DNA of 64,000 bases from NCBI RefSeq assembly GCF_040938485.1, contig NW_027271094.1, forward strand, positions 248,001 through 312,000. The letters are read 5' to 3'. The notes beneath the pieces are model-generated. The model had not been told where the DNA came from, ran no database searches, and saw only the letters and a program-made list of their open reading frames with translations. Position numbers and translations under genes: made by a program. Positions within the stretch are counted from its first letter, which is position 1. Every line of letters starts with the position of its first letter. Shown in pieces: positions 55-60,694 of this stretch. The stretch is from Diadema antillarum (taxonomy: Eukaryota).

Positions 55-124
55 CTCTCTAGAGCGAGACAGAAATCTCGCCCCAGATATTGAAGTAATC
101 AACAAGCTTTTGACGGAAAACAAA
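55..124 (+). CDS. HAL: HAL-b penultimate exon
   Basis: AG at 53-54, GTAAGT at 125; SLERDRNLAPDIEVINKLLTENK. Confidence 0.88.
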
Positions 125-571
125 GTAAGTAATAATCACCTTTGATAAAAAACAAACAAACAAACAAACAAACAAACATTTCGCATCATTTTAAAACAAT
201 TACAAGGGACTGAATTGCCAAATGATAATTAAAACTGCATATCGCAACACAGCGTTATGACGATGTATAAAAGCGCGAGCTTATAGCCACACTTGTCCTG
301 CAAAGAACATCAGGGACAATATATTTGATTTTAACTGTGATCTTATTGTTATTCTCTGTTTTAACGTGTTTCTGGAGGCGAAAACGATTGATGAGATCTT
401 TTTAAAAGGTGTTAACTTTCCCTGTGACAGGTATGGGAAACTGTCATACCGTTCATCGAAAACTACGAATCGAAGATGTCCAAAGATATTGAGGTCCCCT
501 CTCCAACGTCCAACACTTTCAATACCACTGACTGCTCCTTCTCAACAATCGCCAGCATATCAACTGCTTGA
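55..571 (+). CDS. HAL: Histidine ammonia-lyase paralog (HAL-b), last two exons only (55..124, 431..571); gene begins before the window
   Basis: cag|c..aaa|gtaagt 70-nt exon gives SLERDRNLAPDIEVINKLLTENK; cag|gta..tga 141-nt exon gives VWETVIPFIENYESKMSKDIEVPSPTSNTFNTTDCSFSTIASISTA*. Same size and phase as the penultimate exon of the minus-strand HAL (40325..40394), 17/23 aa identical; 17 of first 27 aa identical in the last exon. Confidence 0.88.
431..571 (+). CDS. HAL: HAL-b terminal coding exon
   Basis: AG at 429-430; VWETVIPFIENYESKM..VPSPTS..; TGA 569-571. Confidence 0.85.
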   Translation, partial: VWETVIPFIENYESKMSKDIEVPSPTSNTFNTTDCSFSTIASISTA

Positions 572-1479
572 ACAACACCCGCACACACACAACTCTGGAC
601 GGATTCAGATGTCAACGCGTTCTCTTAAGATTACTTATTCGTTTTAAAATAATGTCGGTGTCTTTTGCTATTGGGGTGCGTATTCTTTATTTGCAAGATG
701 GTAGCTTTGCCTTGTATTCGTGTAAACTTATTTGCGCCTCAAAAAATTGCTTCCAGTTTGTCAAGATGCCTTAAAGAATAATAGTGTTCCATCAGTTGAA
801 AAACGATTTTTTAATACACTACGCTGTTTATAGTTATGTTCTGATTTATTTTTAATACGTTATCTGAAATCTTCACCATCAGTCGAACAATTCAAACACA
901 ATTGGAAGACATGATTATCTATCTGAATTAAAGCCCTTTCACTTATTGGACTAACATATAGTCACTGCCTGGTGGTTTATACAATATTGTATTGACTCCA
1001 ACGTTCAACCATGTAATAAGTGGAAAATGCGCTGTGCTCTTATCAAACGTTAATCATAACTATTATTATATACCATGCCTCATACCACTTGCCGTTTCCT
1101 TAGTGTTGCATTGAATTAACGTTTATAGATAATATAATCCACGACAGATTCATATCGTGTTGTTTTGTCTCTGGATATGATTTGTCCTTTGAGCCACGGT
1201 TATTAAAACTCCCGATCTTAATGACATAATAATTTCTACATCATGATGGGCTGACTTCACGAAAACTTAATGTATTTTGCGGTAATTCTGTGTCAGCGGG
1301 TGAAAATGTCTGACTTCAATGTCATTTATTCACTCGTCGACATGCTATGAGGGTCTAGAAATTGTATATGCCTCATGCCTCGCTATAGGGCTTTCCTGCT
1401 GCGTCCCCATTTTAAAATTTCGAAGTGTTTGTTATTTGTCTTGTTTTATACTCCAGTGAATTACCAAACGTACATGTTA

Positions 1480-1760
1480 TAGGGTGTTTTTCATTATTCT
1501 GAAGGTTCGTTGACCCGAAAATGAAATAAGGTTTGATTATTCCGAAGCTTTGTTATTCCGAAACACGCATATATCCTGTAACTAGATGTTCGTTGGTGCA
1601 AAATATGAAAAATGGTTCGTTAATCTGAACATTAAGTTGCGTTATTCTGAAGATTCGTTAATCCGAAAACGGAAAAAAAGGTAGTTACCAATGACCCTTC
1701 GGAGTTACAAACCTTAAATCTCTCTCGGAATAACGACTTTTTGAAATTACAAATTGTAAC
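1480..1760. repeat. Non-autonomous DNA-element fragment with internal GTTATTCCGAA-type subrepeats
   Basis: Several ttattc(t/c)gaa / gttcgttaatccgaa copies and an inverted tcggaataacga near 1725-1737. Confidence 0.5.
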
Positions 1761-2024
1761 CAACGTTCACAGCACGATTACCGATGTGTGGTAGAAGCCA
1801 TTAGATTTGATTGTCGCTCTGGTTATGAAGGTGCTTGTTTTTTCTTCACTAGCATAATGATAATATCCAACCACCTCGCATAACCACTGCGTTTGTAAAT
1901 TAAATGAAGACATTCGTGATTTTTTTTCCTTCCCAATTTGATTTCACGTCAGTTGACATTGGTTCGTTTTATTTTGTTTTACATCGGTTTGTATTTTAAT
2001 TCATTATTCGCTGTCTTATGTATT

Positions 2025-2285
2025 TTCTGAGGGTCCCCATATCGTACAACCTAATTTGCTTCTTAGTAGGACCCTCCATTTCCATCCCCATCCTTAATAC
2101 CATATGCATGTGTATAATATATTGAAAATGCAATTGTGTTTTCTTCATTCGTTAGGCCCTACTCATTTTCACATTTAGTTTGTTAAATGACGCTTTTTGC
2201 AATTACTGCAAATATCTTCTGCTTACACGTTGTATCTCTGTTTATCTGATGGAAATGAAAATAAATTTGAATCTTGAATCTTGTG
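2025..2285 (+). mobile_element. LINE-type 3' UTR remnant
   Basis: gagggtcc..ggaccctc hairpin, ending ataaatttgaatcttgaatcttg short-repeat tail. Confidence 0.4.
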
Positions 2286-3539
2286 ATCCTGATGTGTTCA
2301 AAATTATGGATGCTTTTTTTGAGGTGGTGCGAGTGAACTAACAGAACTCATGTAAATATGTCTTGTTCAGTACCTTAACTCTTGTGCATTTTGGTCTCAT
2401 AGTTATGTTGAAACCAGTTGGAATAATAGCAGTCATCAAATAGTGTGAGCACGGATAGAGGTTCACAACAAGCTTTCTGCTTCCAAAGGAATATCTTTCA
2501 AGCTGTCGGACAATAAACAGGGGGGGGGGGGGGCGGGGTGATACCGTCAAGCGAGGAAGCCCCCTGAGTCGGCACACGAGGGAATATTTCTAGCCTTTTT
2601 AGTGACGTTTCACGATCTGGGGTGCACACTGCTTTTGGAAATTTTGGACACATCAAAAGTATAAAAATGATCCCGGGACAACGTTAATAGCTAAATCTGT
2701 AACTGCTTGATCTCTCAGTGCGTCTTTCACTGTGCAATAATTAAGTCCATGAAGGTGTACCGAACGGGGAGGGTGTTGTCCCAGAGGGGATATCCCTATC
2801 CCACACGCAGACACGAGTGACACGAGTGAACTTTTGCATTTTTAGAACTGAAATCCAGCGATCTATAGAGTTCACATTTTAGCAGGCACATTTAGAAAAT
2901 TTTGAATTAAAAAAACAAACACACATGGGGTGCCCCACTCCCTTCTACAGAGGAAGCTTTTGTCTTTTTACATTAGAAATTCAACGATCTAGTGCATACT
3001 TTAGGTGGAATATGTTGAAAACTTGAATCTGAACTCTTTTCTGTGCATGTCTATTCCTTGTGTTGGGGGATGTGGGAGGGAGTAAACCCCCCCCCCCCCT
3101 CCCCCCGAGGGAACTGTTGCATTTCTGAAATTGAAATCCAGCGATCTAGTGCACACTTTTTCTCTGAAATAGCTAGGAATTAGCAGGGAAGTGAGGTCTC
3201 ACTTTCCTTTCAGCTGGAATTAGGCATAAAGGGCCTGTAGGATGTAAGGCCAACCAGGGCTTGCTCCAATATAACCATGGGGGTACAAAGACCTTTGTAC
3301 CTCCAGTCATGGTATAACACTATAGGCAAACCAGGAATAATGTGCACGCAATAAAACTGCACTCACATAAACACGCACATTTTTTTTTTTTTATTCTTCA
3401 TTCGAATTTCGTTCAATTTCATATCACAGAATTCACTTTCACAGAAACAAAAACAAAACATGATGCAACTTAAACTGCATTACACTTTAACAATTTTATT
3501 TTTCACAGGGGTCTATGTCCCCTCCCAAACGTCAGGGGT

Positions 3540-3975
3540 GCTGCAGCACCCCTGTGCCCCAGCACGCGAAATCGATCAGCTCAAGGTCCATTGTTGATGA
3601 TTTGGTGCGCTCGGTGATTGGTGCCCGGCAAATACGGAGGCCACTATGCACATAATAGCGCGCGCTACCTGCCTGCGAACCTGTAACATGTTACCTAGTA
3701 CCTTTATAGCACTCACGTCCCACACGTAAAGTCGGTCGTGCCTGCTTGCGTGGATTTCGGTAAAGAGCGACTAAGTTAACGACACTTGAAACTCAAGAGA
3801 CAATAGTTTCAGAAGTCTCAGATTTCGGAACGAATGCCGAATGCGAATGCCGAATCTCGTCTGAGCGAAACCAGTCACTTGATACACGAGTCATTTTCGT
3901 CGCCGCGCTTCGCCTGCCGTACTACTGACTGAGTCGACCTTCACTGCATACGACTACGTAGCAGTGTAGTAAACA
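3540..3975 (+). promoter_or_regulatory. Probable UROC1 promoter / 5' UTR region
   Basis: Locally CpG-rich stretch directly upstream of the ATG in an otherwise CpG-poor window; inverted CCAAT (ATTGG) at 3617-3621. TSS not determined. Confidence 0.4.
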
Positions 3976-4101
3976 ATGGGAAGTTTGAAGGAGCTCTGTG
4001 ATGGGCTGCCCCTCGATCCACTCCCCCGGCCGCGCCCCCGTGACGAAAGCGTAGCCCATGCTCCAGTGCGCAACACGGACCTATCTCCAGCCGAAACACG
4101 T
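3976..4101 (+). CDS. UROC1: UROC1 exon 1
   Basis: MGSLKELCDGLPLDPLPRPRPRDESVAHAPVRNTDLSPAETR, donor GTACGT. Confidence 0.9.
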
Positions 4102-7100
4102 GTACGTGGCAAATATGAACAGGCCTAGAGTCTACTTTATTCTAGTGAGGTACTTTGTACAAGTGAAATACATAGTTATCTGTAGACCAAAGAGGAGCAA
4201 ATTCTTCGATTTCCAGTTAAGTTTTTAACAGTCATGATTCCTACAATAGCAGTCATACAATCGCTTACACGCTTACGGCACTCATTCAGTCAAAAAGCCT
4301 GGAGGAATAAAAGTGATTACATGCCTGGCCATCCATGCAGCTAAATGTGTAGGCGTAGTCTTTAACTTTAACCCTCAGACTCTTTGCAAGTTGCACGATT
4401 GTAAACTGTATCTAGCTTTTGTTGTAGACTCTGCTCGTACAATACTGAGAGAGGCATTCTAATTTCTAGTTCTGTCTAGGCATTGTAAAATTCTACCCCA
4501 TGTAATGTTGCATTCAGAAGCAGCCTATCATATTGATGGGGAAACTTAAAGATAAAAAAAAAATGCGGATCATAACTGCATTCAGCCTCTAATATTAACC
4601 TCTGGATTGTTGAATATTGTCTCTATACTCAAGATGTGACTTTTTACTATGTAAGGTGGTGAACTGGTGGTAGTCCATGTTTGATTTCTCTTGTTTTTTG
4701 TTTTTTTTTTAAATGGCGTGAAAAAAGCTTATCAGATGCGTGTAAGCTACATGTAACCTCTGAGGCAGGAGTGTCATGCCCTGTGCACGAGACTTGGTAG
4801 GTCACTGCATGTAAAGTGGCAAAATTGTGTGGCAGGGCACTATAGGGCACCACTTAGACTTGCACAGTATTCCATATATTCAATAGCATATATGGCATGG
4901 GTTTAGTGAGTGCAGAAATTCAGTGAAACGAGTAGGCCCTATATAATGAGGAATATTGGCCAGTCCGTTTATTGTGCCACCCTCACTAGATGATATGTCA
5001 TAATATTGGACCTATAGTCCTATTCAGAAAAGACAGTTCAGGATATTCATATCATTTCATATCAAAATTTATATTCCTGAAGCTTGGTACTGAGATGTGG
5101 AAATCTTACATGTACAGTATCCAGTCTTCTGGGCGGGGGAGCTTTACTCAACTGCTCCGTTGACTTTGATCTGATATCCTGCAAAATTGATAATGTTTAC
5201 TGGTATAACATAATGTGTACATAATGGACTTAGTGCCATGGTTAGCTGCAGAGTACTAATATACATGTACATGAATTTGCGTGGTGTGATAGTTATTGCT
5301 TTTTGCAAATTTCAAAAGAAATATCATGCAAATGCCTTTGGAAATACAATGTACTGAATTACATATTATGTATGAATAACACGAAAATGCTGTCACTGGT
5401 GAAACTGTAAACAGTTAGGCCTACCTGCCCAGTACAGAATATCAATCAAAGCAAAGCTTTTCACCAATTTCAGTACATGGTACACATCTTCATTACTAAA
5501 TAAATTGTACGAGTAATGAAGTCATAGGAAACTTAGAAAAGATGCCATTATCTAACAACCTGCCTACTGTTACAAGTCAAGTGGTAACACACTCGCATAC
5601 AAGGTGAGGTGCACCAAAGATGTTTTCTTTCTGTAACTTGTTACGGCAGCTGGCTCTACAAAATGCCCTGCGCTACTTCCCATCCAGCCTTCATGAGGAG
5701 TTGGCACCAGAGTTTGCGGAAGAGCTTCGGAACTATGGTCACGTCTACATGTACAGGTTTAGACCCCAGATGGAGATGCGGTAAGTGCCCAAAGTTATAG
5801 AATATGTCAATGGCAATTCGTACACAACAAAAATTAAACACAGAATATGGAGCATGGTAGTAAATGGCAACAATCTCGAACCATTTTAGATTGTACTGGA
5901 AGCTGCAGTGACACTATATCAAGTACAGAAAAAGAAAACTAGCAGGAAAAAGAAAGATGTATTTTCATCTGATTTTATTATGGAAAGTGAAAAAAAGTGA
6001 AGCACAAAAATACTTTGAAACATAGTTTGCCTATTAAAAGAGTCCTGACCTTTTGTTATTGAGAGACTGAACTACATATATCAGCTCTTTTCAGCTCCCA
6101 TGGTTTAGGCTGTAAACATCTGATCAGGTGATTTGAAGTTGTACTACAAGATTGAGGTTGTGTGCAGATTGGCACAAATTCAGTCAGTATGTGCTACAAT
6201 ATTTATTGCTATCATTATTGATATTGTTGTTATCATTATTGTCATTGCAATCTGTATCATTTGTGTGTTTAAAAAAAAGACAAACCACTCTGCCTCACAA
6301 TTATTTCATTCTTCTCACTATTCTTATTATAATTATTTATATTTTCATTGTTATTATTAACAGGATAAAAGATAATGATGAAAATTGTAATAATTGTAAT
6401 AATTATAATCATAATCATAATGACATAATTGTAATAATGATGTTGAAATCCTTATCATCATCACTGTCATTTTCTTCATTATTATCATTATTGATATTAT
6501 GTTGTTGTAACCATACAGGCACAAACTTAACCATATATGCATCTAATATCACTTTCAATTTCCATCCTTCAGGGCCTATCCCATTGATGAATACCCAGCC
6601 AACTCCAGGCAGGCTGCAGCCATTATGCTCATGATCATGAACAATCTGGACCCTCGTGTGGCACAGGTTAATAATGTCTCTTCATAGTCATTCCCTTTCA
6701 GGCAGCCTTCCATTATTTTGGACACACTGCACTTACACTCAGCATTAGCGTTAACTTCATTGTTGTTTAAATCAAATCAATCTGTTCGTTGTATATTCAT
6801 GTACTACTGTATGTAGTGGCACTTTGTGAAAAAATTACACAGAGCCCTACATGTACATGTGCTGGAATTAAGTTAAGATATAAAGCAATATACACTGTAA
6901 AAACATTTGTTATCAGCATTTGATGGGTTGTGTTCACATATTTGTTTAGTAATATTGACACAGGCCACATTTTATGGTCTGTATGTGCATGAGAAAATAA
7001 TGCCTCATCTTATAATATATGTGAGTGTATTTATGTTTTGGCTCTATGTAAAAGAGGAGATCGTGGATATGTACACTGACTGACACTGAAGGATGAACGT

Positions 7101-9205
7101 GAATCCATACCTGCACATGAAACAAAGCAATGACATTGGTAGAATACTGAACTGGTGGCCAAGTAGGATCTTGAATACAGTCTCTTGTGCAATTGGTGTA
7201 CACACTGTATGTTCATGGATTTAAATCATGTTTGATGTAATCATGGTATTGTTCCCTGAAAAGGTGAAACAGAAAAGCGGTACGTGTACCTCCAATGCAT
7301 TTACCATGTACAGTTGTATACATTTACATTAATTTCTTCAAAAGGAAATACACTGAAAGTACATACTGTAGTTTGATGTGCTTGGGAAAACTGTGTTGTG
7401 TACCTGTATGTCATTTTCTAAACAGAGTTGTTAGTTATCATCATAATGGCAATTTTTTAAAAAATGCTTTCTAGTTTCCCCATGAGCTTGTCACCTATGG
7501 CGGAAATGGACAAGTCTTCTCTAACTGGGCCCAGGTGAGTGGTCGTAATGATGATATCATAGAACAGGCAAAATTAAGAAGACAACCCCCCCCCCCCCCC
7601 CAAAAAAAAAAAAAAAAAAAAAAAAGCTGGAATAAAAGTTGAGCTTCACAGGAATAGAATTTTGTGAGAGCAGTACATGTTCACATTTGAAACTTTGTCT
7701 CAAAATATGAAACTGGTAAAGGTGGTGCTTTAATCCTACATTTGGCCTGCTTTTTTTACTTTGTGCCTTGGTGACACTGAGCTAGATGGTTGCCTTCTCA
7801 ATAATATGAACACAAAAGTCATCTCACTAACAAAGTATATAGAATGTAAAGTCAAGGTGAAATATTGACATGTTTTCTTGATGAAAATAAATGTATTATA
7901 CATTTTAGAGAAGTATGCATGTTTGCATTTGAATTGTTATTGCTGTGCAAGTTGTAGAGAAGTTCTCTTGTCTGTGTGATGATCATACAATGTTCAGATG
8001 TCCTATTCATGGTGGCATACAGTACTTTATATTTTACCCCCATTCTGCAGAGTTTTTTTTTCCCTCATCATTTACTCATTGGAAGCAAAATTTGTTGCTC
8101 CTGACCACCAACTGAAGCGGATTGGATCGCAGTCTGATGAATCCAGCTTGTGTTGGTCGACTATCAGGGCAGTGTCAGACATGTCGTGCTCGACCCTCAT
8201 TGGATGGTCTTGCCTCATTGGATCACGCCCGACGTGTCTAACACTTCAGTTGGTGGCCCAAAGCAACAAACTTTGTTTCCAATGAATGACTGGTGAGAAA
8301 AACATTTCCGTGGAACGGGGTATTAGGAAAAACTTTCTTTGCAGTTTGATGCAACAGGTTTCTCTCCAGCACATACTACTGTAAAAGTGGATATTTTCGC
8401 GCGACTAATTTTTCGCGCTTGGCCCAGTAAGAAGAGTTTCACGTGTTTTTAATTCCGCGGAATCAAGACATCACGCACAGGAACATATGGCAAGCAAAAA
8501 TATTCGCGTGCTTTTATTTTTGCGCTAGTTTTTGGTTGCGCGAAATGCGCGAAAATTAAACACCGCGAAAATTTCCACTTTTACAGTATAAGAAAGTATG
8601 GCCTTTAAAGCCTATCTCTTTCTTTGATTGGAATAGTTCTGGCTTGTGATGTACTACCTGGCCCAGATGAGTGAGGAACAGACCTTGGTGATGTACTCTG
8701 GTCATCCATCTGGCCTCTTCCCCAGTCACAGGGAGGCTCCCCGTGTGGTCGTCACCAATGGCATGGTACCCAGTGACTTAATTAACCCTCTCTCTCCTCT
8801 TGTTTATAAACTTGTGTGACACTTTTCTCGTAACATCATACTGTTGCCCTCTTGCTCTGCCAAGTGTTTGATTTGGGTGGGCTGGTGTAGGTATTGTACA
8901 GACAGGCATCATGATGATTTTCTTGTATTGATTTCTGTAGGCAACTGCTGCTTTATTACTCTAGCCAATGTTGTAGAAAGGTTTTTAGCTTGTCTTTAAT
9001 CCTTACATTGTGTATGCAATAATTGGAAATATCTATTTCATATAGCATATTATGATTAGTCAATGACTTTAATTTCTTCTTTCTTTCTTTTCTCTATTTC
9101 TTCCTCTCTTTTATGCTGTATGAGAGATTGTTAATGCCCTGTGAGCACTCAGACTGAGTGGTTAAGGGCATTACAAATACTCTCTATTATTATTATCATT
9201 GTTAA

Positions 9206-9251
<46 letters not shown>

Positions 9252-12200
9252 GTCATCATTATTACCCTTTGTTCTGAAATACTTATGGTATAGGAAGAAT
9301 AAAAGTACTTTACATGTTATATTTTGTAAAATGCAATTGAGTTTGTAATTTGTGTGCCATTGGTATGTGATATTGATTATGTTTTAGGCTAGTGTAATAC
9401 TTAGCTAACTATTTTAGCCAAAATTGATTGATGATTGAAAGATACTGCAACAAACTAGTAATGATGTTGTTTTTTGTGTCTATGTTCACAGATGGTTCCA
9501 AACTACTCAACAAGAGAAAACTACAACCGTCTCTTTGCCATGGGGGTCTCCATGTTAGTAAATTAACTGTCGATTGTACTCAAGTTGATGTGAATGTTCT
9601 GATACTGATTAAAAGAGTTTAGCTACTATGATTATAAGAGAAGAAAGTGATTTGATTAAATATTAAAGTCTATCACGAAGTGATTAGGCTTTTTCTTTTC
9701 CTGGTACACGTCAGCTAAGATTTATTGAATCATTCATCTTGCTGAACCACAAGGTACTGATAGATGTATACATGATGAAATTTAAGTGAGACAATTAATT
9801 GACCGCAAGCATTTCAGTTTTACTAACCCAGGTACATATTGGCTTCACAAACAATAGGCAAGAAATTCAATGGAATATAATATTCTGATTTCGAAGGTTA
9901 TAACTTATCATCTCCTTAATGTTATGGAGATTGTCATAATTCTATTGATTTGTGTAACTGCTGTTATTTTGAACAACTTTTAGATTTATATTTTTCTGGA
10001 AATCTCAGTCATTTGTCAATTGTATTGACAATATTATGCTTCTCTGCATTACTTTTGCTCTACTGTGTGAAGGTATGGGCAGATGACAGCAGGAAGCTAT
10101 TGTTATATTGGACCCCAGGGGATCGTTCATGGGACAACGGTAAGATATGTAGCCAGCATCCTGCTACAGACAGGAAGTGCTGTGATGTCCATCTTTTTGG
10201 CCTTCAGTGCAGTGGTACTCATGTCTTGATTCAATGTATGAAGATTTTCTGTAATAGCTTCAACCTTTATAACCTACCTTTACAGGAACTTGAATTAGTT
10301 CAATTACAGCAATGTTTTATGATGCCATTTTAAAGTAATGAAAGGATATAAGTGGTTTTGTGCTCTTATTATGTAGTCTGCAGATAGGTATTTGATGCAC
10401 AAATGCTAAAAACCTATACTGAAGTGTTCAGATCATCCCTTGCTGGATTGCATTCACTATGTACAAATATAGTATAGTGGGTAAATTATTGCTCTGAAGT
10501 ACAATATTGTATTTCAAACTCTTCAAGATTTGTTTTCAATGTTGCCAGTGTGAAATAATGTTAATCAATGCACTATTGAAGAAACTGGGCTAGTGCTGAC
10601 CTTTTACTTCCTTTTGCAGCTGACAGTCCTCAACGCGGGGCGTAACCACCTTGGCACCAGCGACCTGAGGGGGCGTGTCTTTTTGACCTCAGGCCTTGGG
10701 GGCATGAGTGGTGCCCAGGCCAAGGCAGCGGCGATCTGTGGGTGTGTGGGTGTGGTGGCTGAGGTCAGCAAGGAGGCACTGATGAAGAGACACAAGCAGG
10801 GGTGAGGATTCCATTGACCCTTGACCCTTGACTCTTGACCCTTCCAGCCCTCTTCTTCTTCCCTCTTCCCTATTCCCTCTGTACATTCCTCCTCTTGCAA
10901 CTGATGCTGCACACAGCAGGTCTCCAGTTTCCCTTTTCTCTTCCTTTTTTCTTGTCCTTTTTGTTGCAAAATCTTGTCTTTCAGGAGAAACTTCAGTTTG
11001 GGTTTTAAAAAAAAAAAGTGTAAATATTAGTTTCCTCTCTTTTAAATGCAAAGAAACTTTAGTAGTGACCTTCAGATGGCTGAACACCTTCACGCTTTCC
11101 TACCATTATCTTGTGGATGTGATACAAGTGATGCACATTTATACACCAAAGATGCAATTTTAGGAAGAATCTTGGTTAATCCACTGCATGTATGTTGACT
11201 ATTACCTCCAAGTGTTATGACACCTCTCAATCTTCTAAGGCAGTTGAGATCTCCTGGGATATGCCATTATAGCTCAACTTGTAGGATCTAGACTCTCGAG
11301 CATGAGCTCCCTGGTTCAAGTCCCCTTGCTGTAGCAGTCGTGCCATTAGGCAGGGCACTTTATCCTCATTGCTTAGTTCTTCAAAGAGAACTTTAGAGCT
11401 GTTGGTCCAGAGGTAATTTTGCTCGTAGACATTGCAGCGCTTCCATAATGGCCGTGAAAAATAAACCCAAATTAAATTTGTACCAATGCCTTATTCTTCA
11501 AAACCCAAGTTTTCTTATATTTCTGTCTATTCAAAGTAGAACAGGATTTTGGTACTTTTGAAATACTTTTCCCTTGTGCTGGTTAAACAATCTTTGCTCC
11601 TTCTCAAACAAAACGTGATAATATTCATTATGTCATTTGTTGATGTGAATTGTCCTCTATTATCCACACAGATGGGTCATGGAGGTCATAGATGATGTAG
11701 ATGCACTCATACAAAGAATCAGGTAAGACAGTCATATATTTCTGCTATGCTTTACTCATTTACCTTGGTATGAGTGCTTTAAACTCACTGCATCATCTAC
11801 ACTGTCGGATTTTATTAAGACTGATGTGATGCCTGAGGATAATATAAATTATTTTACCCTCCTGATTCCTTTTCTTGTCATTGTATTCGGCAGACAAGCA
11901 AGACAGGCAAGAGAAGCTGTCAGCATTGGTTACCATGGCAACGTGGTGACTGTATGGTGAGTCCGTTTTCTAGTTGATATATAGCATTATTGAATATGAT
12001 CATGTTTATGATTAGTCTGCTCTATTCAGAGATGTCTGTGACTTTTCCTATCTATCTGATAACCATGAGGATTATGATTTACGTGCATGTCTTAAATGCG
12101 TACTGTATTTGGTGTGACTGTTGATATTTCTTTTACAGACATAAGATACGAGTGACATTCCGGGTCTAGATTGGTGTATGAAACAAGTATGTGAATGAAG

Positions 12201-25630: not shown

Positions 25631-25731
25631 GTGATCAGTGGACATTTTAATGCATTTGTTGTAGTGGTCAGTGGACATTTTAATGCCTTTGTTGGAGTGG
25701 TCAGTGGACATTTTAATGCATTTGTTGTAGT
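25631..25731. repeat. Three copies of a 33-bp tandem repeat
   Basis: gtggtcagtggacattttaatgcatttgttgta with minor variants. Confidence 0.9.
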
Positions 25732-32896: not shown

Positions 32897-32979
<83 letters not shown>

Positions 32980-32980: not shown

Positions 32981-33094
32981 AAAGACTGTGACATCATCAC
33001 TTTGGTCCTCCCTCTACAGTAAATGCCAGTTTTTATCAACAGCTGCCAAGGTTGAATTATAAACTTTCAGCTGTAGCTGGTGCAGTATGTTCTA

Positions 33095-50300: not shown

Positions 50301-53300
50301 GGAGGGACGTAGTAGGACAAGGCCAAGCATTGCAACGTATGCGCGCGTAGAGCACTGGACGCAGAATGTAGGAGTTTATACGCGAGTCTGCTCTGTGATG
50401 AACAAAACGCATACGTGGCTGTACTAGCGTCGCGCGCTGTGTACGTAAATTATACAGTACAGTTGGTTGTGGTTGACTCTGCATGCCAGAAATCAGTGCC
50501 GGTACACGGTGAGTCTATTAAAAGTTGGATCTAGGGCCTAAACCTACGGAAAATACATTTAGATCGAGGGACCTATTACTATAACAATTAGTGCATGTTC
50601 CAAGATGCATTAGTACTGGACTATAGAACTCCTTATACTAAATTATTCCTTGTGCAATTCTATTCACCTTGGCCTGCGGCCTCGGTGAAACAAAACAGCA
50701 CTCGGGATAATTTAGTATTTGTCGTTCTCTAATCCAGTATAGTGCATCATAGAGCATGCACTATTTGTATAATAGCCTCTTCGCCAGCACCATTACACCA
50801 CTGAGCAGAATGAAATATAAATGACCACTGAGTAATAGCTTTACAATACTTACTTCAAGCCCAGCCTTATTGTAAATGCAGCTGGTTCGCACCCTATGAT
50901 ATGCTTTTCTCATTCTTTAAGACATGCACACATTTCAGCATGTGCAGTCAGCAAAAAAAAAAAAAATGAAAATTCCATAAACGGTGCCAAAGCACAACCA
51001 TTCAAGCTGATGACCAAAAATGAAAGTTACACTCTGATAAAGACAGTAACGTATTATGTTTATCTATAATTGATTTATTCACTCAAGGGTAACAAAATAC
51101 TAATTTACATATAGTTTTAGCAATTGCAAATATTCTTGTGATTTAAGTATTGTCACCCCTGAATTTGTAATAACTAAAAAGTTCCTGTTGTTATATCATA
51201 TGAGCATTTACTTGATTGAGCAATCCTATGAAATGGACAGGATGGATAAGTCTTGTATAATTTACTCCCTGAAGACAATGCAGATAAAGTATGTAGAGGT
51301 AATCAGGAAAAAAAAATGTGGAGGGAACAACACAGATAGGTATGTGATCAACATGACCATAAACTTGACAGCAACATTCATAAAGACTATTAACAACATA
51401 AAGAGTTGGATCCTTATCACTTAGCTGAAAACAAATATATTTTGTGTAGGTGTGTCTGTGGGAGTGCAGTGAGTGTATGAACAGCTGTAAATAAAGGAAT
51501 AAATGTTTGAAAAAGAAAAAACGAAATGCACGCAAAAGGAATTAAATGGAGAATGAATATGGCGAAAGGCCAAATCAAACAAACTGTTAAAAAGACGCAT
51601 GAACAAGACAAGCACACAGATTTGGCTAAATACCTTCTGCGCCAAGGGCAGTAATCATTTGAGTTCCATTGATAAGAGCAAGACCCTGTATGCAGAGCAA
51701 TCAAAAGAGCAAAAGACAAATTAACAAAAAATGTCAAAACAACAGCACGAAAGCTCAGTACTCAAAACCACAGCATCCTTGAACATCATTGCAGATTTAC
51801 AAACACAGGCACATTATGTGCTGTTCTTGGTTACGATTGGAAGTTTGTCATGCAAGCTTCACACGCATTTACATCTGCTGGCCTTTGAGTTGGATAAAAT
51901 CACTTGATAAACCTCTTAAAAACAACAACAACAACAACAAACCTTTAAGCAAATTTGTATAGTTAACCCAACAATCTTCCGTGGCAAAATAGGATTTCAA
52001 AGAAACAACATTTCAATGAATATCACAATACAGTGCACTCCCGTTTTAACGAAATGCTCGGGACAGGCAGTTTTCTTTCGTTAAAACGAAATTTCGTTAT
52101 AACCGAACAAATACAATATATAACGAAAACAAGGAAACCACGTATATATATATATCATATTCTGTTTGCTGAACACTCATCATACACTGGAAAGCCATGT
52201 GAAATGTGATGGGATAACTGTATTACAATGATAAACACAAGTTCCCCTCAGAAACTGTGCGTGACACAAGGAGCGAACACACAGTGGTGTGAAGCGTTCA
52301 CCCATGCAGAAACGCTATAAATGCTTGTTCTGCTACGTATTTTCGAAAGCAATTCGCATTTCGTTATAACGGAGCACATTTCTTTTGTTTTTCTTTGTCT
52401 GTGGCGCTCGGAAAAGACTTTGTTATAACGGAAATTTCGCTATAACCGTGTTCGTTATGAGCGAATTTTGTACCATAGACTTTAATGGTGATAATTTTGG
52501 GACCAGAAGATTTACTTCGTTATAACGAAATTTCATTATAACCGTGTTCGTTGTAACGGGAGTGCACTGTACCACATTAAAAATGTCATTTGTCTTTTAA
52601 TATTACTCAATGTTTAAAGAATTGACTTCTACAGATATGCATGGACATTGTAGTAACATTCCGTTAACCATATTCGGATCTATTATTACTTACTTCCTTT
52701 GGCCCAAGTTCTATTGGGGTCAGCCCATGCGCTTTCAGAACCTGTATGTAATTCAAAATTCAAAATAATATACTGTATAATTCTTTAAAAGAATACAGCA
52801 GGTACAGTTACGACAATTTTTCCTGGGTAGTTTAATGGCTATCATGTATGGTAGTAAAAGTGGCATGTCATGACATGGGCAATGTACTGTCATGACATCA
52901 CAATGATATATGTTACATGTTCATTTTGCTGTCAGAACCAACATTGGCAGATCCAAGAAAGGTCAATGTAGGTAAAATCGCTGGTCCAGGGCCCCATTTC
53001 ATAAAAGATGTTCTGATAGCAACTCTTGCTGGAATGGCAATTTCCAATAGCAACAGCAAATCAGGAAGCTGGATTCTTGTCGTTACCATGACAATTGCCA
53101 TTCCAGCAAGAGTTGCTACCATATCAACTCTTTATGAAATGGGGCCCTGAAATGAAATAACTAGCTTCTAGTACAGCTGTATGTTCAAGCACGGGTGAAT
53201 AGATGAGATACTATCATACAAAATGTTGAGGTATGAAATACTAACTGGGTGCACATTATGATGTTCATAGACTAAACAGAAAACACATCAGCTAATAAGA

Positions 53301-56300
53301 GCACAAATTACCCACAAAGTATAAACCTCCAAAAAGGATATAAAGGAGTATGAGAGGAAAACACTTGCTCACTTCAATGAGTGCTTTAACCTTTAAGTTC
53401 AATTCACATGATTCATTCTGTATTATGTCTTTATAGGTGAAGTTTCAATGCTGCACATCCTGTGAATGGAACCCCTCAGGCTATTCCTCTGAACACAACT
53501 ATTGATGTCGTTGAATAATCTATTCTGCCCATTCAACCATAACAATGCTGATCAAGGTGAGCAATGTGCGCTTGCTAACATGCTCTATATGGCGGGAACA
53601 AACACTCGGGAACAAAGGATGCCCTTGGTTTGTATACCATACCCCGCACTTCATATTCATCATGAACGTCTGCTAAAAGAGTGTGCAGAAAGCATGGGAC
53701 CATATATCTACTGCTTTGTGACCCACTTTTTATCTGGTGGTTTCCACAGAACTTGGAAGAAAACTTATCTGATGTATCTGATGGTTCCCCACAGAGTCCA
53801 ATACACATTTTACTGTGATGCACTCACAGGATGCACATGTGCACAGACAGTTATGAAAAGAAAACCATATGTAAAGAAAAAAAAATACTAAAAACCAGCA
53901 TGACCAACATTAGTTGTCCACAACAGCAAAAACAATGATCCACCGGCCATGAATGGACTGGTACACAAGAAAAGTTTGGTGAAAGAACTTACAAACTGAG
54001 ATGCTGAGAATGTCAATGAGATAAGAGCAGACTAAATATTCAAGCATTACTAAACCTGTATGGGTACACTTGTGTATAAAAGAAGCAACACATAATAGGA
54101 ATGGGCTGGCACCATGACCAATTAGGTGACTGAAACAAAGTTTCAATACATAGCGAGTATATACAAACCTAACAAAGTGACAAAATACAGTATCAGTATA
54201 ACTCTGGATGACCCAGAAATTTTCCAGCAATGGACTAGAAACTGAAGGAGTCACTATATAGGAGAGCATTTTCTTTTTAAATGAGAATATAGATGGCAAA
54301 AAGGCACAAAGGAATGGCATTTGATAGCAAAATACACCATGCTTCAATATCTAAATTACAAAAAAAAGTATCAAGGACAAGTTCACACAAATATATGTTT
54401 GCATGAACATTTAGTGAAAGCAGCAATAACATTTGTGAAAGTTAATAATTTGTAAAGTTTCAATGCCATGATGGCAGAATGAGAAGACTACTACAGTTTC
54501 TGATGTCACATACAAATGTAGAATGATACAAAGAAATCATAATGAGAATTCCACACATTTCACTTTTTTTAATGAAAAGTACAAGTACACATTCACTGGA
54601 CATTTACAGACACATATTAAAAGTAATATTCCCCCTGCTTGCTGAAAGAGGCGAGTCAATTGCTCTTTTAGAATGCTGGAAAAGTAAGAACACGTTGCAT
54701 TTTCTTTATATTTTCCTTATATTGTTCTTGAGTATGTGACACAGAGACCCAAAGTAGTCCTCTCATCCAGCGATTGCTGCACAAAAACATTAAGAATCCA
54801 TAACTTTTGAACGGATTGTCTGATTTTCCTCAAACTTTCACGAATGTGTTCTACTGACATTGCAGCATTCACTCAATCCACATTTATTTGGGTGAACTTG
54901 TCCTTTCTCTCACATCTTTGGCCTCAGCATAACCACTCTTAGGACTCCACATTTTGCCTTCTCCCATGAGGCCGAGGGCGAGGTGCGACAGAGGCGCTAA
55001 GTCTCCGCTGGCGCCAACAGTTCCCTTACAGGGGATGACGGACAGACAGGAAGCTGGGGTAGAAAAAACAAAAACAAAAACAGAGTCAACACTTGTAACA
55101 CTTGATCCCTGATCTGATTTGATTATAGTGTTGATAATTTAACAACCACAAATAGATTGGAATATATAAGGAATATATCAGGAATATATCAGGAATATAT
55201 CAGGAACATATCAAGAGTTTCAAGATGCCACATGCAGCTAAGAAATCTTAAAGTTTAATCTTGAAGGGCTCTCACCATTGAAGGCGTCGATCATTTGCCC
55301 AAGAACTCGTACAGAGATGCCGCTGTGACCCTTGGCAAGGATGTTAATGCGGAGGGCCAGGAGCTTTCGGGTGTGCTCGGGGGAGAGGGGCTGACCCACA
55401 CCGACGCAGTGAGAACGGATGAGATTCTCCTGCAGCTCTCTGGAGGAGGACAGACCAATCAGTGGAGGGAAATGAGGGGTCAAAGGTCAGAGATAATCGA
55501 AGGTCATAATTGGTAAAGGTTATGAAAGAATGATGGCTCATGTAGCAGCACAGTAAACTCACAATATAAACTATAAAAGACATGAATCACTTTCATTCTA
55601 ATGCAACGTTTTGATGCTATTTTGATAGCAAACACACATCATTAGATTGAAAATGGCCAGTGGGACAAGGGAAGGGGGTGGTCTCATGACAGAAGCCCCT
55701 GGACTTATCACCCACTCTCTAGATTTTTTTTAAAAAAAGTTTCACATACTTAGGTACTGTTAGCACAAAGGTGAGCTCTACTAATCACAACATATGCAAC
55801 ACAGTTATAATATGCATAACTTATGAGTCCTTAATTTTGCATGCATCTTTACTTACAACAATGCATTTGAGCAAGAAGTTGAGTATAGAATCCATTCATT
55901 CAAATCTCGTTTTCAGCTGTCACATTCTGGCACATAATGAAATCTTGGAAAGCTTAGCACAGATCGCTTTTCATGATCCAACATTTTTTGCAAGATTATT
56001 TCAAGAAGATTTGAATAACTGCAGTAAAACTGTACAGATAGACCTTCAGATCTGTAATGTTATGCTGTATCTTGGGACCAGGAGTAATCAAGTGCAGTAA
56101 GTGAGAAACAAAAACAATATGAAATTGCTTTCTAAGTCATTAAGGTTTTTTTTTTTTACTTTTTGTTTTGTTTCACTTTTTTAAATAAAAAAAAAGGTTT
56201 ATTATTACATAAAAGTTGTTATTTCATCTTACTTCTAAAGTACTCACATCATATGTTTTCTTTCAAAGGGATGGTAAAGTTTTGGTTTAGATTGGGGGCT

Positions 56301-59300
56301 GCAGGTTTCCAACATTTGCGTATGTGTGTGTGTTTGTGAGATAATGAGAAACCTCTTAAGATATATAAAAGAGCATATTTATTCTTAGAGGAATTCACAG
56401 TTTATTTGATGAAAATTGGTCTTCAAATAGCTGACATATTTAGAAAAGCAATCTTAATGAAATACTGCAGGGCACGACTTTTATTAGGATCTCTTTGTTT
56501 TACTTTGTTTTTGGATGTTTCAGTCATTTCAAAACCAATTTTCATCAAATAAACTTTCAATTCCCCTAGAGTTACTTATGCTCTTTAACATTTCAAAGAG
56601 TGGTTTCAAGTATCTTGCAAAAGGGTAAAAGCTGAATCCTCATCTCAACCATTTCTATACTTTAAGAGAAATTTTGTATTTACCGAATTTCATCTGTTTT
56701 TGTTTCACTATTTTCTCTTGTTTTTTGTTCTAAAACAATTTTTTTTTTGCATGAGCATTGAAGACAAAAATTGGTGCTAGAAAGTAAATGATCAATCACT
56801 TCTTGCATTTATGTGTGAAAACACACACACAAACACACACACACACACACAGCATGTTGCTGTCCACATACAACTTTTAATGTTGCAGTGTTACTGAGCA
56901 TTGGGTAATGTAGAGTTTCCACAGACAGTGAGTCCACAAAAGGCCCAACAGACACAGGTGCCTGCAAACAAGTGCAAGGCCGCACAGTTTGACAATGAAA
57001 CTGCATTATCAGCAAATCACACACTGAACTGCACCATAGAGCAGAGTACGCTTGGACCTCACATAAGGAGGGGGTGCTCAAAACATAACACACACACACA
57101 AAAAAAAAAAAATGATAGTGAAATAATTCTGCACAGGCATGGCCTCGGTGGCCCAAGTCAAGTGCATATATTTGCTTTTTCACTTCACGAATGCTTTGGT
57201 GCAAACCAGTTTAGACCAGTTCTCCATGAGGTTTTGTCACAGGAAGCATTTTATTTATGGAAACTTCTTTTTTCACAATCATTTCCTTACTCTAAGGCTA
57301 CATCCTGCTACAAATGATCCTCTTAATCATTTCAGCTTTATGCAAAAAAAAAAGTCTATAACACTAATCTCCCCATTACTCTTCTTCTAGCATAAGTTTT
57401 ACATGACTGAAATAAAAAGCAATATTTTACAACTTGTATGTTCATTCTGGTCTTAATTTCATATCATCACTGCATATTTCTCAAGCACAACAGAAGTTTT
57501 ATCTCTAACATTGGTATGAAAAGTAGGGCCTATACACTGTATCTCTAATATGGATGGAATACATTAAAAAACAGTGAAATTATCTACAACAAAACTCCCA
57601 TCACATGTCCTATTAAAACATAATATGACACTGATTTTTGTACAGCTTCAATATGTTTTATGTGAGAATCTAGCATCTGATATAAGTTAAGGTGATTCAT
57701 TACCTCAAGAATCAGATCTACTCGGGTCCACCAACCCAAAATATATGTACTACAGACTGTACATATCAAAGCACACTGTCAATGGGACTGATAGTTTTTA
57801 AACCTTGACAAACTACAATGTAATTTCCATCTTACATAATAGCTGCTTTTAAGCTTTCAAGCTTCAGTTCACTGATAGTGACCTTGAGTCAAACGAGAAA
57901 CAAACACACGCCCACTTGGACTATTCACTAAATTCATGACTCGTGCAGTCACGCAGTATAACAAACAAATGTTTTCATAAAGAATTCCTACCTGCACTGT
58001 TATCCTAAAAACTGGTAATTTTTAATATGCATACATCATCTGAATTTTGTAAGTCCAAAAAAATATATCTTTCTTTCAGCTTGAACATGTGATAGACTGG
58101 CTTCAAAATGCTTTTCTTAGTTTCATTAAAAGAGTCTAAATGTTTGCGAGACTTACCGTAATTTCTCTGGAGCAATCACCACCCTGGCAAATTTGCCAAA
58201 TCCTGTGTTTATTCCATAGACAACTGAAATGGAAAATAACATGTATTGTATGGCAAACTTAAGAAAGCAATCAAGTACAAAGTGGATATTTTGCAAGTAT
58301 TTTATTGCAATTGTTGAATGATAGAGACTTGTGTATCTATTTGTGGAGAGTGTTGGTGAATAACTGTGTGTGTGTGTGTTGTGATGATGCCGACCTATTG
58401 GTGTGTCTATGCGTAACAATGTGTTAACAAATGAACATTTACACACAGTGACGCTAGAAATACAATTGTGTGGCATTATGTAAAAGCAGGTATAAACTGT
58501 CCATCTCCAGTTATCCAGTCATGTTGGGACTAGTGGTGTTACTAGATAACAAAGCGAGGTATAAATCCAAGCATGATACTTTCAAGTAGATTGGGGTATA
58601 CACAAGTCAACAACGATTTACTATTACTACAATGATTTACATGATATTTGAATTTTCCTATTACTTGTTAATATGAAATCAATAATTGGTAAAAAATACC
58701 CCTTTTCATGTGGATGGATCTCTTTTGAGTTTGCTGCCAAGGAATAATCAAATCTTTGAGGTGCACGTGTACCCCCTTCTCTCTCCAATCCACTTTCTCA
58801 AACCATCGGACAAGCCGCATAGGCCCTACTCTTCTTTCTACAACAATTTGGTTAGAATAGATATCATGATGATCTGTATTTATACCCCCCCCCCTTTTCA
58901 CTGCCTAGTATCTGCAATAGAATTGCTGTTTTGTAATTGGTTTTGGTTAAATTTCTCGCTGAAAAGAAACTGCATGTGGAAGATGAAGACAATCGTATGC
59001 CAGCCCACATCCAGAAAATAACTGAAGTTGGACTGCAGTTATATCCACCACAATTTGTGGTTGCAAATGCATATCTGATTTGGAAGTACAGTCAGCCTTG
59101 CTTAAGTCGAACTCACATAACTTGAAGGTCTTTTTAAGTTCTCTTCTCTTTATATTCTATCGATTTTAATCCCTCGTAAGTTGAATTTTCTCTTAGACGA
59201 AACTATTTCTTAAGTCCAAATAGATTTGACTTTATGCAAGGTTGACTGTACATACCAATCTATCAGGTAAATGAGTATGAAGATTGGATTTACCTTTATT

Positions 59301-60694
59301 CTCTTTCAGGATTTGACTGACGAGGTCACGCGCTTTGCTAACCTTCTCCCACGCAGCTGACGTAAGCTGAACAACAATTTTTTAAAAAGGAGAAAGATAA
59401 CCTTTATTATCATGCTTCACACAACATCTACTCCCTCATATGATACATGTATGCACTCTTCACTCCTCACAGAGGAAAAGTTTATCTGACAATTTTGAGA
59501 CTTTATGCTGTTTTACATCCATCAGCTTATCTGCCTACAGTTGTATACAACTCAGGGTATTCATCTGACTAGTCAATCAGAAAAAAAAGGTCCTCAGCTC
59601 ATCTCTTCCGGGTTTCTTTGGCTGACAAGCCAAAAAAAAAGGGGGGGCCTTCAGCGGAATTTTTTGTGCCACTTACATACTTCCGGTTAAAAAAATGTGG
59701 AGGGCCCAAAGTGATGACAACTTATGTATTCCTTTGTATGGTGCACAAAAAGTGGGGTGGGGGGAGCCCCCCCCCCCCCCCCCCCCCCCCCCCCCGTTCC
59801 GCTGGCCATGCAAACCGCTCAGTGGGCTACAGGGGAGTCACCTTCCCTACGTGCAGCTCATACTCTACGCCTGTTCATGCATAGCAAGCATGCAGTGTGT
59901 TTGACTGCGTAACATTATATCAACCACCGCTTAAGCAAGAGCACCACTTAAACAGGAGAAAAGCTTGTCCTCCTACCCCTCCCGATTAAGCAGTGAGCAC
60001 TGTATTGGCGTCTGAGAAAAGAATAGGTAAGATTATATTCCACATACTAAGAATGTTGCAATAGGATTGGTCCAGAGCTGATCACGTGATGAAGCGTAGT
60101 TTTGCCCATCATATCACCTGAGAAGAAAAGTTTGTTACACTCTATGTTGATAGTCCCTTTTGTTTCGCTGATCTCCACACAGTCCACACAGTCCTAATGC
60201 AAGATGAGTATGCGCGAAATAAAAGTGCGTTGCACTGTGGACTATCATATGACCTAGGTCACTTGATAGTACACAGTGCAACGCACTTTCACTTCAGTGC
60301 CGCGCGGTGCGCGCAGGAAATTCATTGTTTTGTCATCTACGCGCACAGGTAGTCTAAGCCCTAAGGATAACTAAAGACAGCTAAAACGGTTTCAGATGTG
60401 GAATAAAATGGGAATTTCTAGGACCCTAGATGTGGAATATAAAGCAAATAATCAACTTTTAGTTTCAGGCAATGAGACAAACTATCACTTCCTCGGCGAT
60501 CTGAATGTGTACGCTATCTTTCCTCAGCTGCGCTTCGGAAAGACAGCTACATCCAGATCGCCTCGGAAGTGATAGTTTGTCCCATCACCTTCACCAACGT
60601 TGATTATTTGCTTACTAACCTCAATTTTGCGCTCTCCACGGCCAAGCTGAACAAGTTCCTCGGGAGAGAGACTGCATCCATCCAGGTAAATGAT
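37298..60694 (-). CDS. HAL: Histidine ammonia-lyase (histidase, HAL-a), 17 exons identified, 1647 nt / 548 aa; 5' end unresolved
   Basis: Exons 5'->3': 60694-60620, 59366-59294, 58223-58157, 55439-55276, 55053-54914, 52741-52694, 51685-51634, 49976-49881, 49297-49143, 48491-48411, 47756-47691, 43583-43505, 43094-43008, 41948-41814, 41117-41009, 40394-40325, 37447-37298. All GT-AG and phase-compatible. Motifs [16 protein letters not shown] (SH specificity His), [12 protein letters not shown] (MIO-forming ASG), [41 protein letters not shown]. Confidence 0.96.
37920..37953. repeat. (CT)n microsatellite
   Basis: Direct reading. Confidence 0.9.
38620..39933. mobile_element. DNA element with long TIRs (GGC..GCC ends, ATA flanks), Harbinger-like
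   Basis: About 110+ bp inverted arms (ggcacgaattcacgaaggtg..aaaccatggacaaaaaccatggagcgccaagtgtcgcatggaatatttc mirrored at about 39820-39933); ATA on both sides. Confidence 0.8.
38800..39012 (+). mobile_element. L2/Crack-like LINE RT C-terminal fragment inside the TIR element
   Basis: [47 protein letters not shown]. Confidence 0.75.
40325..40394 (-). CDS. HAL: HAL-a penultimate exon
   Basis: [23 protein letters not shown], donor GTGAGT. Confidence 0.94.
41009..41117 (-). CDS. HAL: HAL-a exon
   Basis: [35 protein letters not shown]. Confidence 0.95.
41814..41948 (-). CDS. HAL: HAL-a exon
   Basis: [44 protein letters not shown]. Confidence 0.96.
42097..42181. mobile_element. 85-bp piggyBac-like MITE
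   Basis: ttaa|cccgttgaggacg ... cgtcctcaacggg|ttac; reverse-oriented copies at about 32403-32491 and 29570-29655. Confidence 0.7.
42314..42392 (+). pseudogene. tRNA-Ala(AGC)-like sequence (tRNA pseudogene or SINE head)
   Basis: Perfect D-arm gctc-agtcggta-gagc, 7-nt loop ctAGCaa, T-loop ttcgaat; acceptor stem poorly paired, mismatches in anticodon and T stems. Confidence 0.6.
43008..43094 (-). CDS. HAL: HAL-a exon
   Basis: [28 protein letters not shown]. Confidence 0.95.
43505..43583 (-). CDS. HAL: HAL-a exon
   Basis: [26 protein letters not shown]. Confidence 0.95.
44683..45483 (+). mobile_element. Tsp/pearl/HINE-like (Helentron-associated) non-autonomous element
   Basis: 5' aacaag, subterminal IR gtccccgccgga (44721) / tcggcggggac (45469), four 148-158-bp tandem cores starting 44734, 44892, 45048, 45206, (GGAC/GACG)n microsatellite, 3' hairpin gtcccc..ggggac. 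Confidence 0.8.
46398..46777. mobile_element. TTAAAG..CTTTAA (Kolobok-like) MITE
   Basis: Internal IR gaggaattcaaagtttatttgatgaaaat / attttcatcacataaacgttgaattcctc; opposite-orientation relative at 56263-56665. Confidence 0.7.
47691..47756 (-). CDS. HAL: HAL-a exon
   Basis: [22 protein letters not shown]. Confidence 0.95.
48411..48491 (-). CDS. HAL: HAL-a exon
   Basis: [27 protein letters not shown]. Confidence 0.95.
49143..49297 (-). CDS. HAL: HAL-a exon
   Basis: [51 protein letters not shown]. Confidence 0.95.
49881..49976 (-). CDS. HAL: HAL-a exon
   Basis: [31 protein letters not shown]. Confidence 0.94.
50573..50775. mobile_element. Palindromic MITE
   Basis: ctatta..aattagtgcatg / catgcactatttgtataatag with central ggcctgcggcctcggtgaa. 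Confidence 0.55.
51634..51685 (-). CDS. HAL: HAL-a exon
   Basis: [17 protein letters not shown]. Confidence 0.94.
52031..52569. mobile_element. Tigger/pogo-like MITE
   Basis: ta|cagtgcactcccgttttaacga ... tcgttgtaacgggagtgcactg|ta, internal ttcgttataac repeats. Confidence 0.85.
52694..52741 (-). CDS. HAL: HAL-a exon
   Basis: [16 protein letters not shown]. Confidence 0.93.
52989..53147. mobile_element. Harbinger-like MITE
   Basis: gggccccatttcataaaaga ... tctttatgaaatggggccc. Confidence 0.75.
54373..54906. mobile_element. Second, more diverged copy of the 30583-31147 foldback MITE
   Basis: aaggacaagttcac ... gagaagactactacag ... gtagtcctctcatccag ... ggtgaacttgtccttt. Confidence 0.75.
54914..55053 (-). 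CDS. HAL: HAL-a exon carrying the MIO tripeptide
   Basis: [46 protein letters not shown]. Confidence 0.96.
55158..55215. repeat. 11-bp tandem repeat
   Basis: ggaatatatca about five times. Confidence 0.8.
55276..55439 (-). CDS. HAL: HAL-a exon
   Basis: [54 protein letters not shown]. Confidence 0.95.
56263..56665. mobile_element. Kolobok-like MITE, relative of 46398-46777
   Basis: gaggaattcacagtttatttgatgaaaattgg / ccaattttcatcaaataaactttcaattcc; ends ctttaa. Confidence 0.7.
58157..58223 (-). CDS. HAL: HAL-a exon
   Basis: [21 protein letters not shown], donor GTAAGT. Confidence 0.95.
59089..59248. mobile_element. MITE, CAGTCAACCTTGC family
   Basis: ta|cagtcagccttgcttaagtcgaa ... tttgactttatgcaaggttgactg|ta. 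Confidence 0.8.
59294..59366 (-). CDS. HAL: HAL-a exon
   Basis: [24 protein letters not shown]. Confidence 0.9.
60620..60694 (-). CDS. HAL: HAL-a exon (first identified)
   Basis: [25 protein letters not shown], donor GTTAGT. Confidence 0.9.

Follow-up and report, generated by a model that had tools for sequence, protein, structure and literature searches.

Why two enzymes that act one after the other in histidine breakdown should be encoded side by side in an animal is the question raised by a 64,000-nucleotide stretch of the sea urchin Diadema antillarum genome (GCA_040938485.1, contig JBFRCO010000206.1, positions 248001-312000), referred to here as the window. It holds a gene for urocanate hydratase (UROC1), the only complete gene of three, and parts of two genes for histidine ammonia-lyase (HAL-a and HAL-b), both of which are cut by the window edges. 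HAL converts L-histidine to trans-urocanate and ammonia, and UROC1 hydrates urocanate to 4-imidazolone-5-propionate. Pathway gene clusters are common in bacteria, fungi, and plants and are rarely documented in animals. Our comparisons indicate that HAL and UROC1 probably constitute a conserved neighborhood of two consecutive histidine catabolism enzymes, one whose origin lies no later than the common ancestor of echinoderms and hemichordates.

The window is 100% identical to the contig (P0305 locus versus 27298-64000), and its DNA, at ~38% G+C, is eukaryotic and intron-rich. Exons were laid out by tblastn with Pseudoalteromonas hutH and long-form hutU as guides, plus spliced alignment. These guides placed UROC1 exons colinearly at 5.6-25.2 kb on the plus strand and HAL exons at 58.3-40.3 kb on the minus strand, with landmarks supplied by a six-frame motif search (GLGGMSGAQ at ~10.7 kb, plus strand, and GTVGASGDL at ~55.0 kb, minus strand). 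At the left edge, a translated self-comparison matched positions 53-142 to the HAL exon at 40.3 kb (70% identity). Over 110 kb, the annotation of the contig gives the order vezatin (-), HAL-b (+), 3.4 kb, UROC1 (+), 12.1 kb, HAL-a (-), and a YAF2/RYBP-type gene. The order in the original prediction, which was made from the window sequence (HAL-b +, UROC1 +, HAL-a -), is confirmed by the exon models and by this annotation, and its claim that the genes for steps 1 and 2 of the pathway adjoin each other is supported, no gene lying between HAL and UROC1. Its end coordinate of 60694 falls short, as the start codon of HAL-a lies ~6.5 kb beyond the right edge. The features, in window coordinates, are as follows.

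53-127, plus strand: HAL-b penultimate coding exon (…SLERDRNLAPDIEVINKLLTENKV); 70% amino acid and 77% nucleotide identity to HAL-a exon 40322-40394; peptide present in the annotated HAL-b protein P0480
428-571, plus strand: HAL-b last coding exon, with stop; P0480 residues 614-660 match 428-568 at 98%; annotated gene end 248571 is window position 571
572-3975: spacer from HAL-b stop to UROC1 start, 3.4 kb
3976-25184, plus strand: UROC1 (urocanate hydratase), complete coding region of 18 exons and 679 amino acids, from tblastn and spliced alignment to HutU
3976-4101, 5650-5780, 6573-6666, 7475-7534, 8637-8765, 9492-9553, 10073-10139, 10620-10801, 11672-11722, plus strand: UROC1 exons 1-9
11894-11956, 12777-12956, 13616-13713, 14888-14969, 21288-21409, 21923-21993, 22998-23196, 23758-23939, 25044-25184, plus strand: UROC1 exons 10-18
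25185-37297: tail-to-tail spacer from UROC1 stop to HAL-a stop, 12.1 kb
37298-64000, minus strand: HAL-a (histidine ammonia-lyase), from spliced alignment to vertebrate HAL; the window covers roughly the 3' 575 codons, and the gene extends ~6.5 kb farther to the right
37298-37447 (last, with stop), 40322-40394, 41009-41117, 41814-41948, 43008-43094, 43505-43583, 47691-47756, 48411-48491, 49143-49297, minus strand: HAL-a exons, 3' part
49881-49976, 51634-51685, 52694-52741, 54914-55053, 55276-55439, 58157-~58224, 59295-~59366, 60614-~60697, 63199-~63273 (other-haplotig model), minus strand: HAL-a exons, 5' part
54914-55053, minus strand: HAL-a exon with the catalytic Ala-Ser-Gly (MIO) motif GTVGASGDL, found by motif search; matches residues 134-162 of the solved Pseudomonas histidine ammonia-lyase

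The 18-exon UROC1 model has AG/GT at all junctions, and its translation is exactly 679 amino acids, the length of the annotated product, which contains Urocanase_N, Urocanase, and Urocanase_C in order (PF17391, PF01175, PF17392). Its exons are colinear with residues 40-661 of the bacterial long-form HutU, the partial protein being 59% identical over 635 columns, and individual exons match NCBIfam hutU (TIGR01228) at the corresponding profile positions, a comparison made at the level of single exons. The NAD-site motif GLGGMSGAQ is located in exon 10620-10801. On a trial UROC1 profile built on the bacterial scaffold, the urchin protein scored 91 bits and the scaffold 140 bits.

HAL-a corresponds to the annotated D. 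antillarum protein P0305 (661 amino acids, minus strand), with exon matches of up to 100%, and HAL-b corresponds to P0480 (660 amino acids, plus strand; gene span record 228379-248571), the remainder of which lies to the left of the window. Both copies pass the hutH equivalog TIGR01225 (cutoff, 539 bits), with 717 bits for HAL-a and 691 bits for HAL-b, and both fall far under the cutoffs of the Tyr/Phe lyase and mutase models. Both contain Lyase_aromatic and, with a weaker match in HAL-b, the N-terminal Par3/HAL domain, and both retain the MIO motif in the form GTVGASGDL. The two copies are 80% identical. In a comparison with 22 other animal HALs, which are invariant at 212 sites, HAL-a differs at 1 of these sites and HAL-b at 8, all conservatively (204 of 212 kept); HAL-b is most likely still a histidine ammonia-lyase, as judged from its sequence. 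The two NCBI models of HAL-a disagree at residues ~78-113, where P0305, on the contig of the window, uses a piece at 61567-61608 and P0308, from the other haplotig, uses an exon equal to 63199-63273 and bears a closer resemblance to the HALs of other animals; probably one of these models is mispredicted there.

Neighbors in other species were read from HAL-centered loci reaching 10 kb on either side of HAL. In Strongylocentrotus purpuratus, HAL (+) is followed 4.7 kb downstream by a convergent UROC1 (-, 679 amino acids). Acanthaster planci has two HAL genes (both +, encoding proteins of 633 and 649 amino acids) and then UROC1 (-, 676 amino acids) at 3.5 kb, and in the hemichordate Ptychodera flava the order is UROC1 (+, 676 amino acids), 3.7 kb, HAL (+), and Med20. 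A tblastn check recovered UROC1 exons at 72 to 78% identity in these three loci and in none of the others. Comparing microsynteny across echinoderms, a hemichordate, amphioxus, and a mollusc, as the original prediction had proposed, thus shows that the pairing is not confined to Diadema: four ambulacrarian species from three classes and two phyla share it (two echinoid orders, an asteroid, and a hemichordate). Its presence in both echinoderms and a hemichordate therefore dates it at least to their common ancestor. The outer 10-kb flanks of the four loci have no homologous genes in common, and the HAL-UROC1 pair has outlasted both local inversions and the turnover of its outer neighbors.

Outside the ambulacrarians, neither UROC1 nor AMDHD1 occurs within 10 kb of HAL in Pecten, Lingula, Lineus, Tachypleus, or the sponge Corticium, and the same range around amphioxus HAL showed no UROC1. 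The amphioxus locus contains a different pair, in which HAL is followed 2.5 kb downstream by a convergent gene for a 431-amino-acid amidohydrolase. Because its exons match NCBIfam hutI (imidazolonepropionase) colinearly, this gene is identified as AMDHD1. The loci with a tandem HAL pair and with AMDHD1 are laid out as follows, in their own coordinates.

Acanthaster planci, locus L008, 1-503, 10001-29579, and 33097-39579: tandem HAL pair and UROC1
Amphioxus (Branchiostoma), locus L010, 10001-24324, plus strand: HAL
Amphioxus (Branchiostoma), locus L010, 26814-31244, minus strand: AMDHD1

Human HAL is at 12q23.1, and AMDHD1 has been mapped to the same genome-wide association study locus (PMC6737293). 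The contrast drawn in the original prediction between the urchin and the human, in which HAL lies beside AMDHD1, holds and extends to amphioxus, and the adjacency of the two genes in amphioxus implies that the human HAL-AMDHD1 neighborhood predates vertebrates. Like HAL-UROC1, the chordate pair is a two-gene neighborhood from the same pathway that includes HAL and has been conserved over hundreds of millions of years; unlike HAL-UROC1, in which the partner of HAL catalyzes step 2, its partner catalyzes step 3 (imidazolonepropionase). In none of the genomes examined were both pairings observed together. Two deuterostome branches thus have HAL-centered pairs drawn from the same four-step pathway, HAL-UROC1 in echinoderms and hemichordates and HAL-AMDHD1 in chordates, and we count the second pair, adjacent in amphioxus and at one locus in human, in favor of a conserved neighborhood.

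Each of the three Diadema genes is an intron-rich transcription unit of its own, and together they do not form an operon. HAL and UROC1 may have been kept together through one shared regulatory or chromatin domain, which would allow the production and removal of urocanate to be switched on together. The 3.4-kb spacer at 572-3975 would be expected to hold the 3' untranslated region of HAL-b and the promoter of UROC1. In the 12.1-kb spacer at 25185-37297, there was no Pfam-bearing open reading frame (ORF) among those tested, and this spacer aligns to Diadema setosum at 80 to 88%, similar to introns.

As a class, the arrangement is either a conserved microsyntenic pair or a minimal eukaryotic metabolic cluster. 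Its adjacency is kept in distant lineages despite changed surroundings, as in the former, and it joins nonhomologous genes of one pathway, as in the latter, although two kinds of enzyme fall under the three-gene minimum of some definitions. The yeast DAL (allantoin) and GAL clusters are alike in that nonhomologous genes of one degradative pathway adjoin in a eukaryote, and for the urchin the balance of the intermediate urocanate might matter; they differ from the urchin pair in that the latter has only two kinds of enzyme, a putative co-regulation, and an animal host. Conserved microsyntenic pairs of the regulatory-block type in metazoans resemble HAL-UROC1 in showing cross-phylum adjacency despite rearrangement around them, but the classic blocks combine a developmental gene with an enhancer-bearing bystander, whereas HAL and UROC1 are two enzymes of one pathway between which no conserved noncoding element was detected. 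A full-text literature search found no description of HAL-UROC1 linkage in animals; the individual genes are ordinary and already annotated, and the arrangement, which is apparently undescribed, is alone of interest. It offers a testable case in which to ask if metabolic genes of an animal can be kept adjacent by selection, for example, to control urocanate levels.

Several considerations weigh against a neighborhood maintained by function. The four ambulacrarian cases share ancestry and are not four independent events, so slow rearrangement alone could preserve one pair. By our own rough estimate, a genome-wide scan is expected to meet about one same-pathway neighbor pair by chance. No conserved noncoding sequence was found between the Diadema spacers and those of S. 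purpuratus, Acanthaster, and Ptychodera. The absence of the pair from protostomes, the sponge, and amphioxus is valid only within 10 kb of HAL, and the enzymatic function of HAL-b is, as noted, deduced from its residues.

The history of HAL itself bears on how the locus has been shaped. In a maximum-likelihood tree of 32 animal HALs, HAL-a and HAL-b of Diadema form one clade (100/99), to which the camarodont urchins are the sister group; both belong to a 100/100 echinoid clade, and each Diadema copy splits into D. antillarum and D. setosum branches. HAL therefore duplicated locally after the camarodont split and before the split of D. antillarum and D. setosum, which placed UROC1 between two oppositely oriented copies. 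As the two copies are sisters within the Diadema lineage, the "sandwich" of UROC1 between two HALs is a duplication of that lineage and not the ancestral arrangement. The two Acanthaster copies are likewise sisters (100/99), placed beside Patiria, and HAL has duplicated beside UROC1 at least twice independently, in Diadema and in Acanthaster. The stem of HAL-b (0.28 substitutions per site) is much longer than that of HAL-a (0.034), an approximately eightfold-faster rate, which makes HAL-b a candidate for sub- or neofunctionalization.

Two proteins of D. antillarum and one of D. setosum, each annotated as "histidine ammonia-lyase-like," were retrieved with a profile built from an imperfect alignment (A2) of a scaffold protein with the window exons, on which the window HAL ranked second in a local trial; MAFFT misplaces short, nonoverlapping fragments. 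In Lytechinus variegatus, three near-identical 667-amino-acid "histidine ammonia-lyase-like" proteins (P0405, P0481, and P0485) have consecutive accessions on one chromosome and could be either very recent tandem copies or unlabeled isoforms.

The explanation that competes most strongly with a conserved functional neighborhood is that a single chance event in an early ambulacrarian brought HAL and UROC1 next to each other and nothing has parted them since, such that their adjacency has no function and the HAL duplications are ordinary events. We consider this a real possibility, if short of an even chance. It would account for the lack of detectable conserved elements in the spacers and for the variable orientation of the genes, which implies that no fixed promoter arrangement is needed; ambulacrarian genomes are also known to retain much ancient synteny, and a scan of many windows carries a look-elsewhere effect. 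A chance leftover sits less easily with the turnover of the outer neighbors while HAL and UROC1 stayed together and with the existence of HAL-AMDHD1 as a second pair: with six possible pairs and ~20,000 genes, we estimate the probability of two independent pairs at ~4e-7, a figure that takes no account of the look-elsewhere effect.

A more ambitious history, which we regard as doubtful, would make both pairs remnants of one ancestral deuterostome cluster, UROC1-HAL-AMDHD1, from which ambulacrarians kept HAL-UROC1 and chordates kept HAL-AMDHD1. Under this tentative scheme, the cluster would have been held partly by selection for >500 million years, and in vertebrates the two rounds of whole-genome duplication, followed by reciprocal gene loss, would have parted UROC1 from the others, leaving it on the duplicate copy (chromosome 12 with HAL, AMDHD1, VEZT, and YAF2; chromosome 3 with UROC1 and RYBP). 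HAL is common to both pairs, as such a cluster would predict. The flanking genes also hint at it: on the same contig but outside the window, vezatin flanks HAL-b (locus L006, 1-8031) and the YAF2/RYBP gene flanks HAL-a (locus L004, 1-2226). Human UROC1 is at 3q21, and YAF2 (12q12) and RYBP (3p13) are on the same two chromosomes as VEZT/HAL/AMDHD1 and UROC1. Human VEZT is at 12q22 (PMC5458088), near the 12q23.1 position of HAL and AMDHD1 (PMC6737293).

Against a three-gene ancestor stands the fact that no examined species has all three genes together. The original prediction had suggested that AMDHD1 and FTCD might lie shortly beyond the window edges; in the 110 kb of the contig that was covered, the only genes are vezatin, HAL-b, UROC1, HAL-a, and YAF2/RYBP, and amphioxus AMDHD1 exons used as a probe matched nothing in the window, in the Diadema flanks, or in any ambulacrarian locus. 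UROC1 is similarly missing from the 10 kb around amphioxus HAL. If the three-gene ancestry were true, the locus would represent a true animal catabolic gene cluster, and HAL, by duplicating locally more than once (independently in Diadema and Acanthaster), would provide a means of adjusting the flux that enters the pathway. The HAL-UROC1 pair can also serve as a marker in reconstructions of the deuterostome linkage group ancestral to human 12q22-23 and 3q21.

It is very unlikely that the pair descends from a bacterial hut operon, whether retained or horizontally acquired, with hutH and hutU entering jointly and never parting. The resemblance on which this idea draws is genuine: in bacterial hut operons (hutH-hutU in Pseudoalteromonas and hutUHIG in Pseudomonas), as in Diadema, the same two families adjoin and catalyze consecutive steps (MIO-type HutH/HAL and NAD-dependent HutU/UROC1), and the Pseudoalteromonas long-form HutU is the protein that shares 59% identity with urchin UROC1. 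The hut operon is, however, polycistronic, whereas the Diadema genes are 20 to 33 kb long, with 18 or more introns each in the animal genes, and lie 3 to 12 kb apart. HAL-a converges on UROC1 across the longer of two spacers (3.4 and 12.1 kb), an arrangement at odds with co-transcription, and orientation differs between species. Of the later genes and regulators of the operon, no hutI, hutG, hutF, or HutC/HutP-type regulator is near the Diadema pair, and a search of the window and flanking loci for hutI-like sequence was negative. Animal HAL carries the extra N-terminal Par3/HAL domain, and urchin HAL groups with other animal HALs. Moreover, in the sponge, four protostomes, and amphioxus, the 10 kb on either side of HAL shows no such pairing, so that continuous inheritance would need many independent losses, and retention from a bacterial operon is not favored. 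To call the locus "hut-like" overstates the likeness, given that its genes, which encode two kinds of enzyme, are rich in introns, are transcribed separately, and vary in orientation. The original prediction is thus partly supported, with the pairing and the chordate contrast upheld and the nearby AMDHD1/FTCD, the ancestral sandwich, the hut-like character, and the operon retention set aside.

An assembly artifact, in which a haplotype copy that was collapsed or misplaced mimics a second HAL or the contig is misjoined, is refuted for practical purposes. The assembly does contain haplotigs, and the alleles P0305 and P0308, on different contigs, share 94% identity. HAL-a and HAL-b, however, differ far more than alleles do (80% identity), and each is matched by a separate allele on the second haplotig (2.08 Mb) and by a separate orthologue, both on one D. 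setosum chromosome. The HAL-UROC1 adjacency also recurs in three other independently assembled genomes.

The conserved HAL-UROC1 neighborhood is not the entire content of the window. The earlier statement that these are the only host genes is correct for protein-coding genes, but the window also contains a tRNA-Ala and transposon debris. ORFs at 261-644, 37965-38372, 39728-40123, 50131-50514, 53493-53888, and 56898-57314 have no Pfam match and were rejected as further gene candidates. The tRNA-Ala(AGC), at 42318-42393 on the plus strand, lies within a HAL-a intron on the opposite strand (Rfam tRNA, 35 bits, with ARAGORN in agreement) and could be either a real tRNA gene or a tRNA-derived repeat. 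The transposon debris occupies 15529-17294 (minus strand) in the 6.3-kb UROC1 intron 14970-21287, where a 244-amino-acid ORF at 16105-16836 matches reverse transcriptase (RVT_1) and DUF7869 and is adjoined by ORFs without a Pfam match.

In the sponge Corticium candelabrum (locus L003), HAL and histidyl-tRNA synthetase are divergent and ~520 bp apart, at 6580-9478 (-) and 10001-16025 (+), and it is possible that these two histidine-using enzymes share a promoter. Within a HAL-a intron of the Diadema window, a 158-bp tandem repeat at 44733-45260 (3.4 copies, 93% identity) aligns to several places in the D. setosum locus.

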